This document shows, one piece after another, positions 1,361-36,512 of a stretch of DNA of 64,000 nt (position 1 is the first letter of the stretch; every line of letters begins with the position of its first letter). The position numbers were made by a program, and so were the translations under genes. Where the stretch lies: sequence record AP017925.1. One strand, given 5' to 3'. The notes beneath the pieces were generated by a model, which ran no database searches, was not told the DNA's origin, and was given only the letters and a program-made list of their open reading frames with translations.

Positions 1361-1711
1361 TTACTGCTTTAGCTTGCGTTTCCAGCCGATACTCAGGACG
1401 TAACGCACGCCTTCTTCGACTTTTGTTACCGAGTGAGTTACCAGATCCGGACGGAAGTAGTTGATGCCTCTCCAACGAAAGAGGGACTTCTCACAAACCA
1501 ACTCTCCGCCTTTCTTCGGCGCCTTTAACTCGATGTTCAAACGGAAGTGACCGTAACCCTCGATTACGGGATCGACATGGGGAGGAATGGAACTCCCTAC
1601 GCCATATCTGATCAGATGGCAGTCCATGTTCAGAAGCTGGCTATTGAGCATCGTAAAGATGCGATAGCCTGTTCCCTGTCTGCCATCTTGCCAATGCCAC
1701 AGCTTTCTCAT
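1361..1711 (-). CDS. 2OG-Fe(II) oxygenase superfamily protein (minimal)
   Basis: IPPHVD (HxD), GGEL, distal H in VTHSVTKV, and R in GVRYVLSIGW: the typical facial triad plus 2OG-binding Arg. Confidence 0.75.
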   Translation of the reverse strand: MRKLWHWQDGRQGTGYRIFTMLNSQLLNMDCHLIRYGVGSSIPPHVDPVIEGYGHFRLNIELKAPKKGGELVCEKSLFRWRGINYFRPDLVTHSVTKVEEGVRYVLSIGWKRKLKQ

Positions 1712-1758: not shown

Positions 1759-2394
1759 TCAGCCCTTGGACACCATCGTCAGTGTGATTGCACGACCATC
1801 CGGCAGAAACACGCTTTCACCGAACGTCGGGAACTTGGTTTCCGAGTTCAGGTTGAAGTCTTTGATATCCCGCACCATATACGCCATCACGATCTCGTTC
1901 GTGATATGGAACATACGATCACGCACGTCAGCATAAGGCACGCTGACGATAGTATCACCAAAGTCCTTTACCGTACCTTTGTGGAACGAGAACGACATCA
2001 TGCTGTTCGGCGTGTAGCTGTAGGTCTCACCTACTTCCAGTGCCTTGATCGCTTCGTCGTGGTTCCGGTCTTTAGGCGAGAACCCGCGATAAAGCGTTTC
2101 ACGTACCGGAGGCGGTTGAATGGCTTCGAACACACGCTTGGCTTCGCGCAGTTTCGGCAACAGCGAGTAGTCAGTGACGGTGATCCAGCGTTCCACAGCT
2201 TCGAGGAGTTCTTTGTGCTGAATCAGTTCTCGGACGATGCGTTCGTCCACGTCTTCCTTCTGGAAAGTGACTTGGGGATGGGACCACACCCGGTCTTCTA
2301 ATTTGTCCCACAGTTGTTTGGTCCAGTCGTACACTTCTTCTTGCTCCAGGCCAAGCCCGGGTTGCCCGTCGAGGGACAGAACTTTCAAGCCCAT
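1759..2394 (-). CDS. putative ADP-ribosyltransferase (R-S-E type)
   Basis: TLYRG ... MSFS ... FGESVFLP matches the order and spacing of the ART R-S-E catalytic motifs. Confidence 0.55.
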   Translation of the reverse strand: MGLKVLSLDGQPGLGLEQEEVYDWTKQLWDKLEDRVWSHPQVTFQKEDVDERIVRELIQHKELLEAVERWITVTDYSLLPKLREAKRVFEAIQPPPVRETLYRGFSPKDRNHDEAIKALEVGETYSYTPNSMMSFSFHKGTVKDFGDTIVSVPYADVRDRMFHITNEIVMAYMVRDIKDFNLNSETKFPTFGESVFLPDGRAITLTMVSKG

Positions 2395-2440
2395 GATGAA
2401 TACCTGTTGGTTAGATGATGGCTATAAAATAGTTCACAGC

Positions 2441-2478
2441 GGCATAAAAAGCGGGAGAGGGCACTCACGCCCTCTCCC
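2441..2478 (-). terminator. intrinsic terminator with TTTATGCC tail
   Basis: GGGAGAGGGC/GCCCTCTCCC stem followed on the minus strand by TTTTTATGCC. Confidence 0.8.
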
Positions 2479-2479
2479 T

Positions 2480-3240
2480 TAGTCCATTGTTTCCCCAAGA
2501 CGCTCCACCAAACGTCAAGAGAATTCAACCGCAAACCAAACATCAGCCGAACGAATACCACGCTTCTATAGTGAGTGTGGGGAGAGGATACGGGCCCATC
2601 TACCTATCTTACCTCTCCCCACTACCTCGCAGGCCACCATCAAGCCTTTTGAGTAAAGTGGTAACAACCCACTCACTACCGACACTGTTACCCGCCTCAG
2701 GACGTAACCTGTGCATTGGGTCAGCTCCCAACTCAATGTCGGAACTACGCTCGTTCTAACGTAGCTTTGCTTTTTACCGCTTACCGAGATAGCGGTGTTT
2801 ACCTCGCCTCATTTGCTCGGGTCTTTGAGGTTTCGCAATTCCATATCCTTTTTTGATAGGCTGGAGGTCTGCAAGAGGTAGAGTTTCATGCCCCGGCTTC
2901 AGCTGATGCACTTTTCCCTACTCGCTCCGCACCCACAGGCTATCCCTCTAAACTAAACACCGACTGTCGCATGGCTGCTACAGCTCCGTATCGCTTGACT
3001 TTAATTGTCGACTCTAAACCACTACTACCTATCAGATCTTTGCGAGGTATGTCGGTCTTACATTCTTGCGATGGGCTTAAGCTACTCTGGTGGAGAAACC
3101 TAATCAGCAAGCTGCCGGTGTAGAAACGATCTAGAGCCGCCTGTCACTCCGAGTGACGGACAGTGTCAATTTAAAAGGATAGTCCACGAGCAATCTGAAC
3201 AAAAACATTCAGAAATGGCTAATGGGACATAACATAGGGA
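2480..3240 (-). ncRNA. candidate large structured ncRNA (~750 nt; GOLLD/ROOL-class candidate)
   Basis: No credible ORF over ~800 bp, bounded by terminators at both ends. Many stems: GTGGGGAGAGG/CCTCTCCCCAC, GGTAAC/GTTACC, ACCGCT/AGCGGT, CTACG/CGTAG, GTCACT/AGTGAC, CTGAA/TTCAG, and GACGTTT/GAGCGTC with G-U pairs on the minus strand. Family identity not verified. Confidence 0.55.
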
Positions 3241-3281
3241 AATATGATAAGGTAACTAGGTATTTACCTACTTATGCAAAC

Positions 3282-3309
3282 AAAAAAATAAAGCGGCCGA
3301 AGCCGCTTC
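3282..3309 (-). terminator. intrinsic terminator
   Basis: AAGCGGC-cgaa-GCCGCTT (cUUCGg loop on minus strand) followed by TTTATTTTTTT. Confidence 0.8.
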
Positions 3310-3311
3310 AC

Positions 3312-3437
3312 TCACCAAGACCAGTGAGCAAGTCCAGCGAGGATCAGTAAGACCACCAACAACTTGATCTTAGTCTTCTGGACCTGTACGTAGAAGTCTT
3401 TGTCCTCTACGAGGCGATCGAACACGGAACGACTCAT
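3312..3437 (-). CDS. small membrane protein (41 aa)
   Basis: Hand translation MSRSVFDRLVEDKDFYVQVQKTKIKLLVVLLILAGLAHWSW*. ATGA overlap with the upstream gene. Below the track length cut-off. Confidence 0.65.
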   Translation of the reverse strand: MSRSVFDRLVEDKDFYVQVQKTKIKLLVVLLILAGLAHWSW

Positions 3438-4301: not shown

Positions 4302-4339
4302 TTCTACTCCCTAAAGTAAGTTAACGGCATAAAAGGAAT

Positions 4340-4592
4340 GCAGGGGGTGGCGAAACCAAGGCTAACCCGTCCCTGATCCCGCCACCCTTCTCCCACACCG
4401 CCCTCACCGCGTGCTCGCGGCCAGAGGACTACATTGGGAAGGCTGCGTCGACAGACGCTCCGGCGGCTAGCGGGCCGCACCATGGCGTCAGCTGTCTTCC
4501 CTGCGTGGGGAGCTTTGCGGCCCGCGATCTCGCGAGGCGCGCTCCCCATCGTTCAGCGCGGGCGAGTCTCTCAATCCCGCCCGCGCCTGAAC
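4340..4592 (-). ncRNA. candidate GC-rich structured ncRNA (~250 nt) at the 3' end of the tRNA array
   Basis: Stems GTTCAG-CGCGGGCG/CGCCCGCG-CTGAAC, GGGGAGC/GCTCCCC, GGGAAG/CTTCCC, a 17-bp GGGTGGCGGGATCAGGG/CCTTGGTTTCGCCACCC hairpin with G-U pairs on the minus strand, and a possible long-range GCAGG/CCTGC pairing. Visibly more GC-rich than flanking DNA. Confidence 0.6.
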
Positions 4593-4610
4593 ACTTCACT
4601 ACAACAATAC

Positions 4611-4718
4611 TGATCCCTCGGGTTAGGATTCGAACCTACGACCTGCGTCTGGTATGGTAGGCCGGCCGCTGAGGACCCGCCTTGGTGACGCCGCTCTGCC
4701 GGACTGAGCTACCGAGAG
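4611..4718 (-). tRNA. tRNA-like RNA with a 37-nt insert in place of the anticodon loop (identity undetermined; ends UCA, not CCA)
   Basis: Acceptor CTCTCGG/CCGAGGG, TA, D-arm GCTC-AGTCCGGCA-GAGC, anticodon stem GCGTC/GACGC enclosing 37 nt (4650..4686), variable region AGGTC, T-arm GTAGG-TTCGAAT-CCTA(A)C. Confidence 0.7.
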
Positions 4719-4733
4719 TATGCTACGGAAAAC

Positions 4734-4809
4734 TGGCTCCAAGGGCTGGGTTCGAACCAGCGACCAACGGCTTAACAGGCCGCTGCTCTACCGACTGAGC
4801 TACCTCGGA
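4734..4809 (-). tRNA. trnN: tRNA-Asn (anticodon GTT)
   Basis: 76-nt canonical cloverleaf: TCCGAGG/CCTTGGA, D-arm GCTC/GAGC, anticodon loop CT-GTT-AA, T-loop TTCGAAC, encoded CCA. Confidence 0.97.
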
Positions 4810-4822
4810 ATACTACTAAACT

Positions 4823-4933
4823 TGGTGCAAAAGGTACGATTCGAACGTACGAAGTCTTTTCCCATCCTTAGATGAGTCACCTTGTGATGATACGGTTGTA
4901 TCTCACTGCCTTAAACCACTCAGCCACTTTCGC
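4823..4933 (-). tRNA. class II (Leu/Tyr/Ser-like) tRNA-like RNA with a 25-nt insert in place of the anticodon loop
   Basis: Acceptor GCGAAAG/CTTTTGC, discriminator A, CCA. Class II-style D-arm TGGCTGAGTGGTTTAAGGCA, T-arm GTACG-TTCGAAT-CGTAC. Stem GTGAG/CTCAT encloses 25 nt (4877..4901) and is followed by a long variable arm. Total 111 nt. Confidence 0.7.
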
Positions 4934-4949
4934 TTGGAAACTACACTCC

Positions 4950-5200
4950 TAGAGCCAGAAGCAAGGCAGCTAACGGCGTCTCCATGACGGTTCTGCTGCC
5001 GCTGCCGAGCTAGTGGCCTAAGGGCTATAGTCTCGCTGCTAACAAATCCATAACTTGAGAGTTGCGCTGATGAACGCTTCTCCCCTACACTTTAACGAGG
5101 ATCATCACTCCTCGCAACTAGAGGCCTTTCGGCGGTAATCCTAACGCTGCCATCCCGGTCAGGGGATGGCCAGCAAACTCGAAGAAAACTAGAGCAGCTA
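4950..5200 (-). ncRNA. candidate structured RNA or leader upstream of the tRNA array
   Basis: Stems GCTG-GCCATCCC/GGGATGGC-AGC, GCC-GAAA-GGC (GNRA loop), GAGGA/TCCTC, and GGCAGC/GCTGCC enclosing CGTC/GACG. No credible ORF. Confidence 0.35.
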
Positions 5201-6164: not shown

Positions 6165-6239
6165 GATGGGTCTCTGGGTTAGGGTGCAGTGAGAAGTTGC
6201 ACCAAGATGATAAGGGCTACTGGTTAAAACTAGATTGAC

Positions 6240-6270
6240 GGCATAAAGGGGAGGCAAAACGCCTCCCCTC
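6240..6270 (-). terminator. intrinsic terminator with TTTATGCC tail
   Basis: AGGGGAGGC/GCCTCCCCT stem next to GGCATAAA on the plus strand. Confidence 0.8.
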
Positions 6271-14746: not shown

Positions 14747-14827
14747 TTTTATTCCGCCACGAATATGAGTTAAAAGATACTCGACCCCTTATAAGGGTCG
14801 TAAGCTCATAGTAATCTCAGTCGCAAC

Positions 14828-14860
14828 GGCATAAACGGCGGTGGGGGAAACCCACCGCCT
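14828..14860 (-). terminator. intrinsic terminator with TTTATGCC tail
   Basis: GGCATAAA-C-GGCGGTGGG-ggaaa-CCCACCGCC. Confidence 0.8.
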
Positions 14861-27003: not shown

Positions 27004-27107
27004 TATTCGACCTTGTCTAACTGGTTGAAGAAATAAGCGTAGCACGAGATACGTAAATACCTCGCGCCCATAAAATTGGGAAGCTAAAAAAATACAGGAG
27101 AAACGAC

Positions 27108-27143
27108 GGCATAAAGGCCCGGGGAAAACCCGGGCCTGTTATG
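27108..27143. terminator. symmetric terminator after nrdB
   Basis: GGCATAAA-GGCCCGGG-gaaaa-CCCGGGCC-TGTTATG. Confidence 0.8.
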
Positions 27144-36425: not shown

Positions 36426-36471
36426 GGTCTCATCTTTCCTCTGTACATATTTTAACCGTCGTAGTAAAAAC

Positions 36472-36512
36472 GGCATAAAACCCACTAAGAAGCCGAAGCC
36501 TCCTAGTGGGTT
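36472..36512 (-). terminator. intrinsic terminator with TTTTATGCC tail
   Basis: GGCATAAAA-CCCACTA...TAGTGGG. Lies inside the N-terminal extension of the track ORF, supporting the later start. Confidence 0.7.

Follow-up and report, generated by a model that had tools for sequence, protein, structure and literature searches.

Large non-coding RNAs with an elaborate conserved fold have been described in phages and bacteria, and the closest systems to the locus considered here are GOLLD, ROOL (Rumen-Originating, Ornate, Large) and OLE. GOLLD is about 800 nt in length, is encoded by phages and prophages, often near tRNA genes, and has a conserved 3′ core and a variable 5′ domain. ROOL is a large, ornate, pseudoknotted RNA of phages and prophages near tRNA islands, which is abundant, has no known function, and forms RNA-only cages through kissing loops and A-minor contacts. 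OLE is a highly conserved structured RNA of about 600 nt that is found in Bacillota, is associated with the membrane, and works with known protein partners as the scaffold of a ribonucleoprotein. In OLE, a palindromic loop tetranucleotide (GGCC, GAUC, or AGCU) makes a symmetric kissing dimer, and palindromic loop tetranucleotides including AGCU mediate symmetric kissing in OLE and GOLLD (10.1101/2024.12.08.627333). Furthermore, small non-coding RNAs have been found by transcript mapping in the phiKZ-related jumbo phages phiKZ and 201phi2-1, some of which are conserved across genera (PMC11512511; PMC13282480), although these are under 250 nt and mostly derive from 5′ UTRs. Here, a gene-free stretch of a phiKZ-related Ralstonia jumbo phage is compared with these systems. 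It is identified, with high confidence, as a stand-alone gene for a structured RNA of about 785 nt that is conserved in at least eleven lineages of phiKZ-like jumbo phages and matches no Rfam 15 family.

Location and noncoding nature of the element

The window, i.e., the whole 64,000-nt stretch of DNA that was analyzed, is 100% identical to Ralstonia phage RP31 (AP017925.1, 277 kb; genus Ripduovirus), and window position 2300 corresponds to record position 126300. In the record, 2395–3311 is an unannotated gap between ORF124 (1759–2394) and ORF125 (3312–3437), and every gene nearby is on the minus strand. The gap lies in the longest stretch of the window without an ORF of at least 100 aa (1230 nt), the next longest being 987 nt around the tRNAs. 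Two intrinsic terminators in minus-strand orientation bracket it, with stems at 3313–3286 and 2478–2453, each followed by a T run. The initial annotation had described positions 2480–3240 as the longest non-coding stretch, bounded by terminators at 3282–3309 and 2441–2478, with at least eight predicted stems and minus-strand G-U pairing. This observation is confirmed: the limits are slightly wider, at about 3228 to 2447, far more than eight stems are supported, and conserved G-U pairs are frequent. The minus strand folds better than the plus strand (−294.8 against −241.8 kcal/mol; z −5.7 against −2.9).

The element is not a protein-coding gene. All six frames carry 10–17 stops in RP31, and 8–20 in RP31 and three homologues. 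Among three lineages, the variable sites fall evenly on the three codon phases (111/96/102), and most indels are of 1 nt. Mechanical ORFs of 40–90 codons exist, and gene callers placed short ORFs over parts of the element in two homologous loci (L045 and L053, see below), but none of these ORFs is conserved, and the one AUG preceded by a Shine-Dalgarno-like sequence opens frames that differ in every lineage. Small or recoded proteins are therefore a very improbable explanation. A DNA element such as a replication origin, packaging site or partition site could also account for a long conserved noncoding stretch, and the origins and pac sites of these phages are unmapped. However, no iterons, tandem or direct repeats, or AT-rich unwinding region were found, and the GC-skew trend does not change at the locus. 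Conserved G-U pairs, half-compensatory changes and strand-specific fold stability make sense only for RNA, and the terminators bracket the element in transcriptional orientation; this explanation is thus very unlikely.

Homologues in phiKZ-related jumbo phages

The element is conserved as a unit. A blastn search found the block 2438–3243, and only that block, in Ralstonia phages FLC4-3B and FLC1-1B at about 73% identity, where the same gene-free gap is present. These phages share only 35% of their genomes with RP12 at the DNA level (PMC11530567). Between RP31 and FLC4-3B, nucleotide identity is 73% for the whole RNA, 80% for the RNA core, 79% for the dCTP deaminase gene and 69% for the ORF130 gene, and the element is under purifying selection comparable to that on a neighboring enzyme gene. 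The immediate downstream gene, ORF124, is not shared with the FLC phages and could not serve as an anchor.

Exact-pattern scans with conserved blocks in IMG/VR, JGI metagenomes and GTDB genomes yielded only RP12, one IMG/VR contig (UViG_3300049460_000312, hereafter UViG312) and an odd contig, L006/L007 (L numbers denote loci retrieved from sequence collections). The remaining hits (L008, L010–L037 and L039–L041, the last three coding) were chance hits, and all chance loci were rejected by the core model. The productive route was the dCTP deaminase gene 3.5 kb upstream, whose relatives at 58–92% identity lie on many long metagenomic contigs, eleven of which were retrieved. A covariance model of the 145-nt core, built from RP31, FLC and UViG312 alone, found the element at the syntenic place in L042/L043, L044, L045, L046, L049, L051, L052 and L053 (seven new lineages) at 65–163 bits, and in L047 at 25 bits, rising to 67 bits with a second model. 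All hits were on the strand of the neighboring genes. No copy was found in L048, in L050, or in the dCTP deaminase region of 201phi2-1. Among 50,697 phage records, blastn searches with the RP31, L046, L051 and L053 cores hit only the four Ralstonia phages. The family is thus confined, as far as seen, to a clade of phiKZ-related jumbo phages comprising RP12, RP31, FLC1-1B, FLC4-3B and metagenomic relatives.

Furthermore, L006, part of a Psa21-like jumbo phage (its major capsid protein is 63% identical), carries a shortened version of roughly 250 nt directly after an ORF and before a terminator. It shares the AAAC-hairpin-AAAGCA start, a second hairpin, and the three-way junction with the identical 21-nt H1 hairpin. 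The second model scores it at 21.7 bits, with a rough E of 1e-4 to 1e-6, although part of that score comes from the 21-mer by which L006 was found.

In RP31, a tRNA-Asn gene lies at 4734–4809, about 1.5 kb away, with tRNA-like elements beside it. tRNA genes lie within 1–2.5 kb in six lineages (RP31, FLC, UViG312/L042, L049, L052 and L053), whereas none were found in the retrieved loci of the other five (L044, L045, L046, L047 and L051). The association with tRNA genes is partial, holding in only about half the lineages, and appears weaker than the initial annotation had assumed.

Architecture and covariation

The features are as follows, all on the minus strand.
3286–3313: intrinsic terminator of the upstream ORF128–ORF125 unit (12-bp stem plus T run), isolating the RNA gene from read-through; the hairpin is conserved in the FLC phages and UViG312.
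3226–3231: TATGTC, candidate phiKZ-type promoter and start site, in which the G at 3228 would be +1.
2447–3228: the RNA gene proper, about 785 nt.
2931–3191: 5′ domain D1, closed by a long G-U-rich helix (about 3185–3166 with 2956–2938) and containing the internal helix 3140–3128/3020–3007; present in seven lineages, and replaced or shortened in L045, L053, L051 and L047.
3085–3095: D1 hairpin CUC-CACCA-GAG, invariant in the seven lineages that have D1; its loop UCCACC (3094–3089) is complementary over 6 nt to the loop of the 3′ hairpin (2509–2504).
2997–3009: invariant hairpin GAC-AAUUAAA-GUC.
2807–2830: hairpin with a covarying stem, whose loop carries CCGAG (2820–2816), the first partner of a loop-loop pseudoknot.
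2776–2796: hairpin whose loop carries CUCGG (2788–2784), the second partner of the pseudoknot; 8 pairs, 6 with changes on both sides, 100% paired.
2743–2775: near-invariant linker AAAAAGCAA, then hairpin 2766–2758/2751–2743 with invariant loop AGAACG.
2679–2742: three-way junction, comprising the closing stem 2742–2734/2687–2679 (9 pairs, 7 with changes on both sides, 100% paired), hairpin H1 2732–2715 with loop AGCUGA (identical in 10 of 11 lineages and in L006), and a variable hairpin H2.
2569–2678: 3′ sub-domain closed by UAGUGAGU/ACUCACUA (2678–2671 with 2576–2569), holding hairpin 2647–2631 (loop UGAUGGU) and the long hairpin 2622–2577.
2577–2622: long hairpin GGGGAGAGG/CCUCUCCCC with a conserved 24-nt apical region containing GGUAGAUGGGCCCG; 11-bp stem with several covarying positions and almost no broken cells.
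2493–2521: 3′ hairpin with invariant loop UGGUGGA (GGUGGA at 2509–2504); 12 pairs, 6 with changes on both sides; present in eight lineages.
2440–2478: intrinsic terminator of the RNA (stem 2478–2453, U run 2450–2446), overlapping TTTATGCCG (2448–2440), the likely start signal of ORF124.

The fold is supported by covariation, with a universally conserved core of about 290 nt that contains two hairpins joined by the loop-loop pseudoknot, the three-way junction with the AGCUGA loop, and the closed sub-domain with the long hairpin. In the 145-nt core (2800–2655), counts were made on eight lineages, five of which were not used to build the model: 97.8% of cells form standard pairs and 24 of 43 pairs change on both sides, which 0 of 500 shuffles reach, while partners slid by 1–3 columns give 34–48% pairing and 3–5 such pairs. 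Several G-U pairs are conserved, which fixes the strand. In the 3′ sub-domain (2686–2562, ten lineages), 96.2% of cells are paired and 13 of 29 pairs change on both sides, against 5.9 ± 1.6 in shuffles. In D1 (3196–2928, seven lineages), 89.1% are paired, leaving about 11% non-canonical cells, and 10 of 37 pairs change on both sides, against 4.1 ± 1.6 in shuffles. These per-helix counts are relied on because the global tests are weaker. Whole-alignment shuffle z-scores (−10.7 on the minus strand, −4.3 on the plus strand) come from a lenient null, since the dCTP deaminase coding alignment also reaches −4.3, and pairs taken from single-sequence minimum free energy folds are kept no better than slid controls overall, only double changes being enriched. 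Long-range helices outside the core have no covariation and remain provisional.

The loops of the two adjacent hairpins at 2830–2807 and 2796–2776 are complementary in five different ways across lineages: CCGAG/CUCGG, CCAAG/CUUGG, CUAC/GUAG, GCCAUU/AAUGGC and CCGAC/GUCGG. By contrast, the complementary D1 loop UCCACC and 3′ hairpin loop GGUGGA are invariant, so that covariation gives no support to their contact, although both are missing together in L045 and L053, which suggests, but does not prove, a docking contact. The dispensable 5′ domain and the 3′ hairpin appear or disappear together. The palindrome GGGCCC is partly paired in the consensus fold and carries no weight here as a free palindromic loop.

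Inferred transcription, family relationships and function

The 5′ edge of conservation carries T(A/G)TGTC, which lies 425–439 nt upstream of the core in seven lineages and at −296 and −392 in two shorter versions, i.e., in 9 of 9 alignable lineages. In phiKZ, the late promoter consensus is TATG with the G as the start site (PMC4666361). No sigma-70-like promoter is present in RP31 at this place, and RP31 completes infection in rifampicin, relying on phage RNA polymerases (PMC5468394). However, two lineages have TGTG instead of TATG, and neither the phiKZ middle motif AAnnTTACC nor the early motif TATATTAC is enriched in the window. At the 3′ end, a hairpin and U run overlap TTTATGCCG, which occurs 10 times in the window against 0.31 expected, nearly always right after a GC-rich hairpin; TTATGCC lies 202–211 nt after the core in seven lineages. 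The transcript inferred from sequence alone would run from G3228 to about U2447, roughly 785 nt, and would be about 610–630 nt in L045 and L053. A cis-acting leader or riboswitch-like element might be considered because the RNA lies on the same strand as, and directly upstream of, ORF124. This is very unlikely, since a strong intrinsic terminator followed by the genome-wide hairpin-TTTATGCCG start signal separates the two, and the downstream gene differs between lineages while the RNA is conserved.

The initial annotation had proposed a GOLLD/ROOL-class candidate and had named OLE, HEARO and raiA as further models to compare, with no hit plus covariation among homologues taken in advance as support for a new class; the latter outcome was obtained. 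None of the 4227 Rfam 15 models, among which are GOLLD, ROOL, OLE, HEARO and raiA, matches the element at gathering score in a search of the whole window, and none matches in 2300–3400 even at E ≤ 10 with permissive filters, only weak chance matches (mir-1249, AniS and similar) being returned. Homologues as divergent as L047, L051 and L053 likewise have no match. ARAGORN finds no tRNA or tmRNA in 2395–3311, Rfam gives no tRNA or tmRNA hit there, and no RNase P, group I or group II intron model matches. Segments that the initial annotation had found reminiscent of GOLLD 3′ domains are family-specific helices here, and this resemblance was not borne out. Its interpretation is therefore partly supported: an ORF-free, terminator-bounded, independently organized and highly structured RNA gene is upheld, whereas membership of GOLLD, ROOL, OLE, HEARO or raiA is not, and a divergent member of these families is extremely unlikely.

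What remains is a likeness of kind with GOLLD and ROOL, in size, phage origin, a conserved 3′ core with a variable 5′ domain, and kissing loops. The element fits the loose class of large ornate phage RNAs, being longer than 500 nt and phage-encoded, with an elaborate conserved secondary structure that includes a pseudoknot. Compared with GOLLD at about 800 nt, the element is about 785 nt in size and phage-encoded, with a conserved 3′ core, a dispensable 5′ domain and a covarying loop-loop pseudoknot, but its sequence and helices are unrelated and its carriers are phiKZ-like jumbo phages of Proteobacteria. ROOL differs in size and fold. The H1 loop contains AGCU, as in the kissing tetranucleotides of OLE, although no conserved neighboring protein was found. 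The neighboring proteins have no known function, and none is a conserved adjacent partner. Literature searches found no description of this RNA.

A large ribozyme, for example an RNA-processing or self-processing catalyst used during infection, is possible but unlikely. Long runs of conserved unpaired nucleotides sit in a compact, pseudoknotted core (AAAAAGCA, AGAACG, AGCUGA, GGUAG and UGAUGGU), a pattern typical of RNase P and of group I and II introns, which also share its size range, and odd tRNA-like genes with enlarged anticodon loops lie nearby in RP31. However, no ribozyme model in Rfam matches, no catalytic motifs were recognized, and there is no exon context, the flanking genes being complete and separated from the element by terminators. 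tRNA genes are absent near the RNA in five lineages, and complementarity to the neighboring tRNA-like elements and the leader did not exceed shuffled controls, although this method is poorly suited to long RNAs. A decoy or sponge that titrates a host factor or an RNA-targeting defense system is equally unlikely. The element lies in a variable accessory region with small ORFs and tRNAs, the kind of neighborhood where phage counter-defense genes are often found, and its own inferred promoter and terminator suggest high expression. By contrast, no repeated binding motifs were found, such an elaborate and strictly conserved fold is more than a sponge needs, no mimicry of any known host RNA family was detected with Rfam, and two conserved 19–20-mers are absent from 185,579 bacterial and archaeal genomes.

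Taken together, the analysis establishes an independent, noncoding, conserved and structured RNA gene between two terminators, which is held with high confidence, as is, slightly less firmly, its status as a new family. Transcription by a phage-encoded RNA polymerase from a TATG-type start at G3228 is inferred and is somewhat more likely than not. It is also inferred, and only tentatively, that the RNA acts in trans through its three-dimensional architecture as an RNA-only or RNA-protein scaffold, in the manner proposed for GOLLD and ROOL; this remains a best guess, and no finding distinguishes a scaffold from a ribozyme or a decoy. The explanation as a whole is held with moderate confidence. 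The strict conservation of unpaired nucleotides in the core argues for specific contacts with a protein, another RNA, a ligand or the RNA itself. In this view, these nucleotides would serve as contact surfaces, and the palindromic AGCU in the H1 loop is a candidate self-association site and the only hint of RNA-only homo-oligomeric assembly, although L047 breaks this palindrome (AGCGGA).

A more far-reaching possibility, which is unlikely on present evidence but not excluded, is a wholly new class of large functional RNA specific to phiKZ-like (nucleus-forming type) jumbo phages. It would be either a new natural ribozyme or a new self-assembling RNA architecture, made by the phage's own non-canonical RNA polymerase and needed for a step peculiar to these phages, such as RNA handling between the phage compartment and the cytoplasm, or host-independent gene expression. 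RP12 and RP31 are rifampicin-independent, while their relatives RSL2 and RSF1 are not, and no copy was found in those relatives by blastn.

Four cultured phages carry the element, so it is directly testable, and the alignment of eleven lineages gives a ready covariance model and concrete mutational targets, i.e., a minimal core (the version in L006), a covarying pseudoknot, and a peripheral domain pair gained and lost together. It also gives a defined, probably highly expressed substrate for studying transcription by the phage's non-canonical RNA polymerase. Bacterial and phage RNAs longer than about 500 nt with an elaborate conserved fold are rare, and nearly every such class has turned out to be either a ribozyme or an unusual assembly, GOLLD and ROOL forming cages and OLE a dimeric scaffold. 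The present RNA is a new class of that kind in jumbo phages, where none has been described, and it is the best-conserved element of an otherwise variable accessory region.

Small conserved element and tRNA-like genes upstream of the large RNA

Window 5014-5120, minus strand: a second, small conserved noncoding element of about 95 nt
Window 4826-4933, minus strand: a tRNA-like gene with an enlarged anticodon loop
Window 4610-4714, minus strand: a second tRNA-like element, directly 3′ of tRNA-Asn

A second conserved noncoding element, about 95 nt in size, lies about 1.8 kb upstream of the large RNA, within the ORF-free leader preceding the tRNA cluster or at the same place where tRNAs are absent. 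In addition to window 5014-5120, the element is found in the related phage loci L002 (7490-7600), L005 (2610-2700), L044 (12540-12640), L046 (12840-12930), and L049 (12250-12350). It comprises invariant blocks (AAAGUGUAGG, CAAGUUAU, and GACUAUAGCC) and covarying hairpins, in which 11 of 25 predicted pairs are changed on both sides, and no match to it was found in Rfam.

The tRNA-like gene at 4826-4933 was scored at 35.8 bits by the Rfam tRNA model, although it was not called by ARAGORN. It contains a 25-nt anticodon loop in place of 7 nt and a long variable arm, and it is located next to tRNA-Asn, at a position where the FLC phages have ordinary tRNAs. The element at 4610-4714 (L002 6859-7024) consists of a 7-bp acceptor stem, normal D and T arms, and an anticodon stem (GCGUC/GACGC) enclosing about 37 nt, and is 76% conserved with an unannotated stretch of FLC4-3B. 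A similar insertion-bearing tRNA-like sequence is visible in alignment A6 just upstream of the RNA of the L045 locus. In lineages without tRNA genes, 600-700 nt of further ORF-poor sequence precedes the large RNA (L044 12363-13045, L046 12641-13319, and L047 12471-13080), and this sequence contains conserved patches shared with the RP31 tRNA region, including a 19-nt identity with window positions near 4354-4375.

Shortened core, downstream genes, and phage distribution

L006 1587-1792, minus strand: a shortened version (about 250 nt) of the RNA core
Window 1361-1711, minus strand: a small protein gene downstream of the RNA

The shortened version of the RNA core was found in L006 (IMGVR_UViG_3300035034_002228), a Psa21-like jumbo phage contig, and the same version is present in L007. 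It lies downstream of the major capsid gene and a 215-aa ORF and shares an identical 21-nt hairpin with RP31, and a 76-codon ORF without a ribosome-binding site overlaps it. Furthermore, a small protein (113-116 aa) with a weak 2OG-Fe(II) oxygenase match recurs one or two genes downstream of the RNA in several lineages (window 1361-1711, L049 14724-15065, L052 12517-12867, and L053 14222-14566), and an AAA ATPase gene follows further on. Regarding distribution, the large RNA is among the features not found by blastn in RSL2 or RSF1. This is a correlation only with the reported replication of RP12 and RP31 in rifampicin, whereas their closest relatives RSL2 and RSF1 do not replicate in it, a difference for which the authors of that work suspect RP12/RP31-specific factors.

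A hairpin-associated punctuation motif

Window 2440-2448, 4325-4333, 6239-6247, 14827-14835, 27107-27115, and 36471-36479: examples of the motif

A genome punctuation motif, in which a GC-rich hairpin is immediately followed by (T)TTATGCCG, occurs throughout the window. Ten exact copies were counted against 0.31 expected, together with more than 25 hairpin-TATG(C/T)C sites. The motif looks like a terminator fused to a phiKZ-type TATG start signal.
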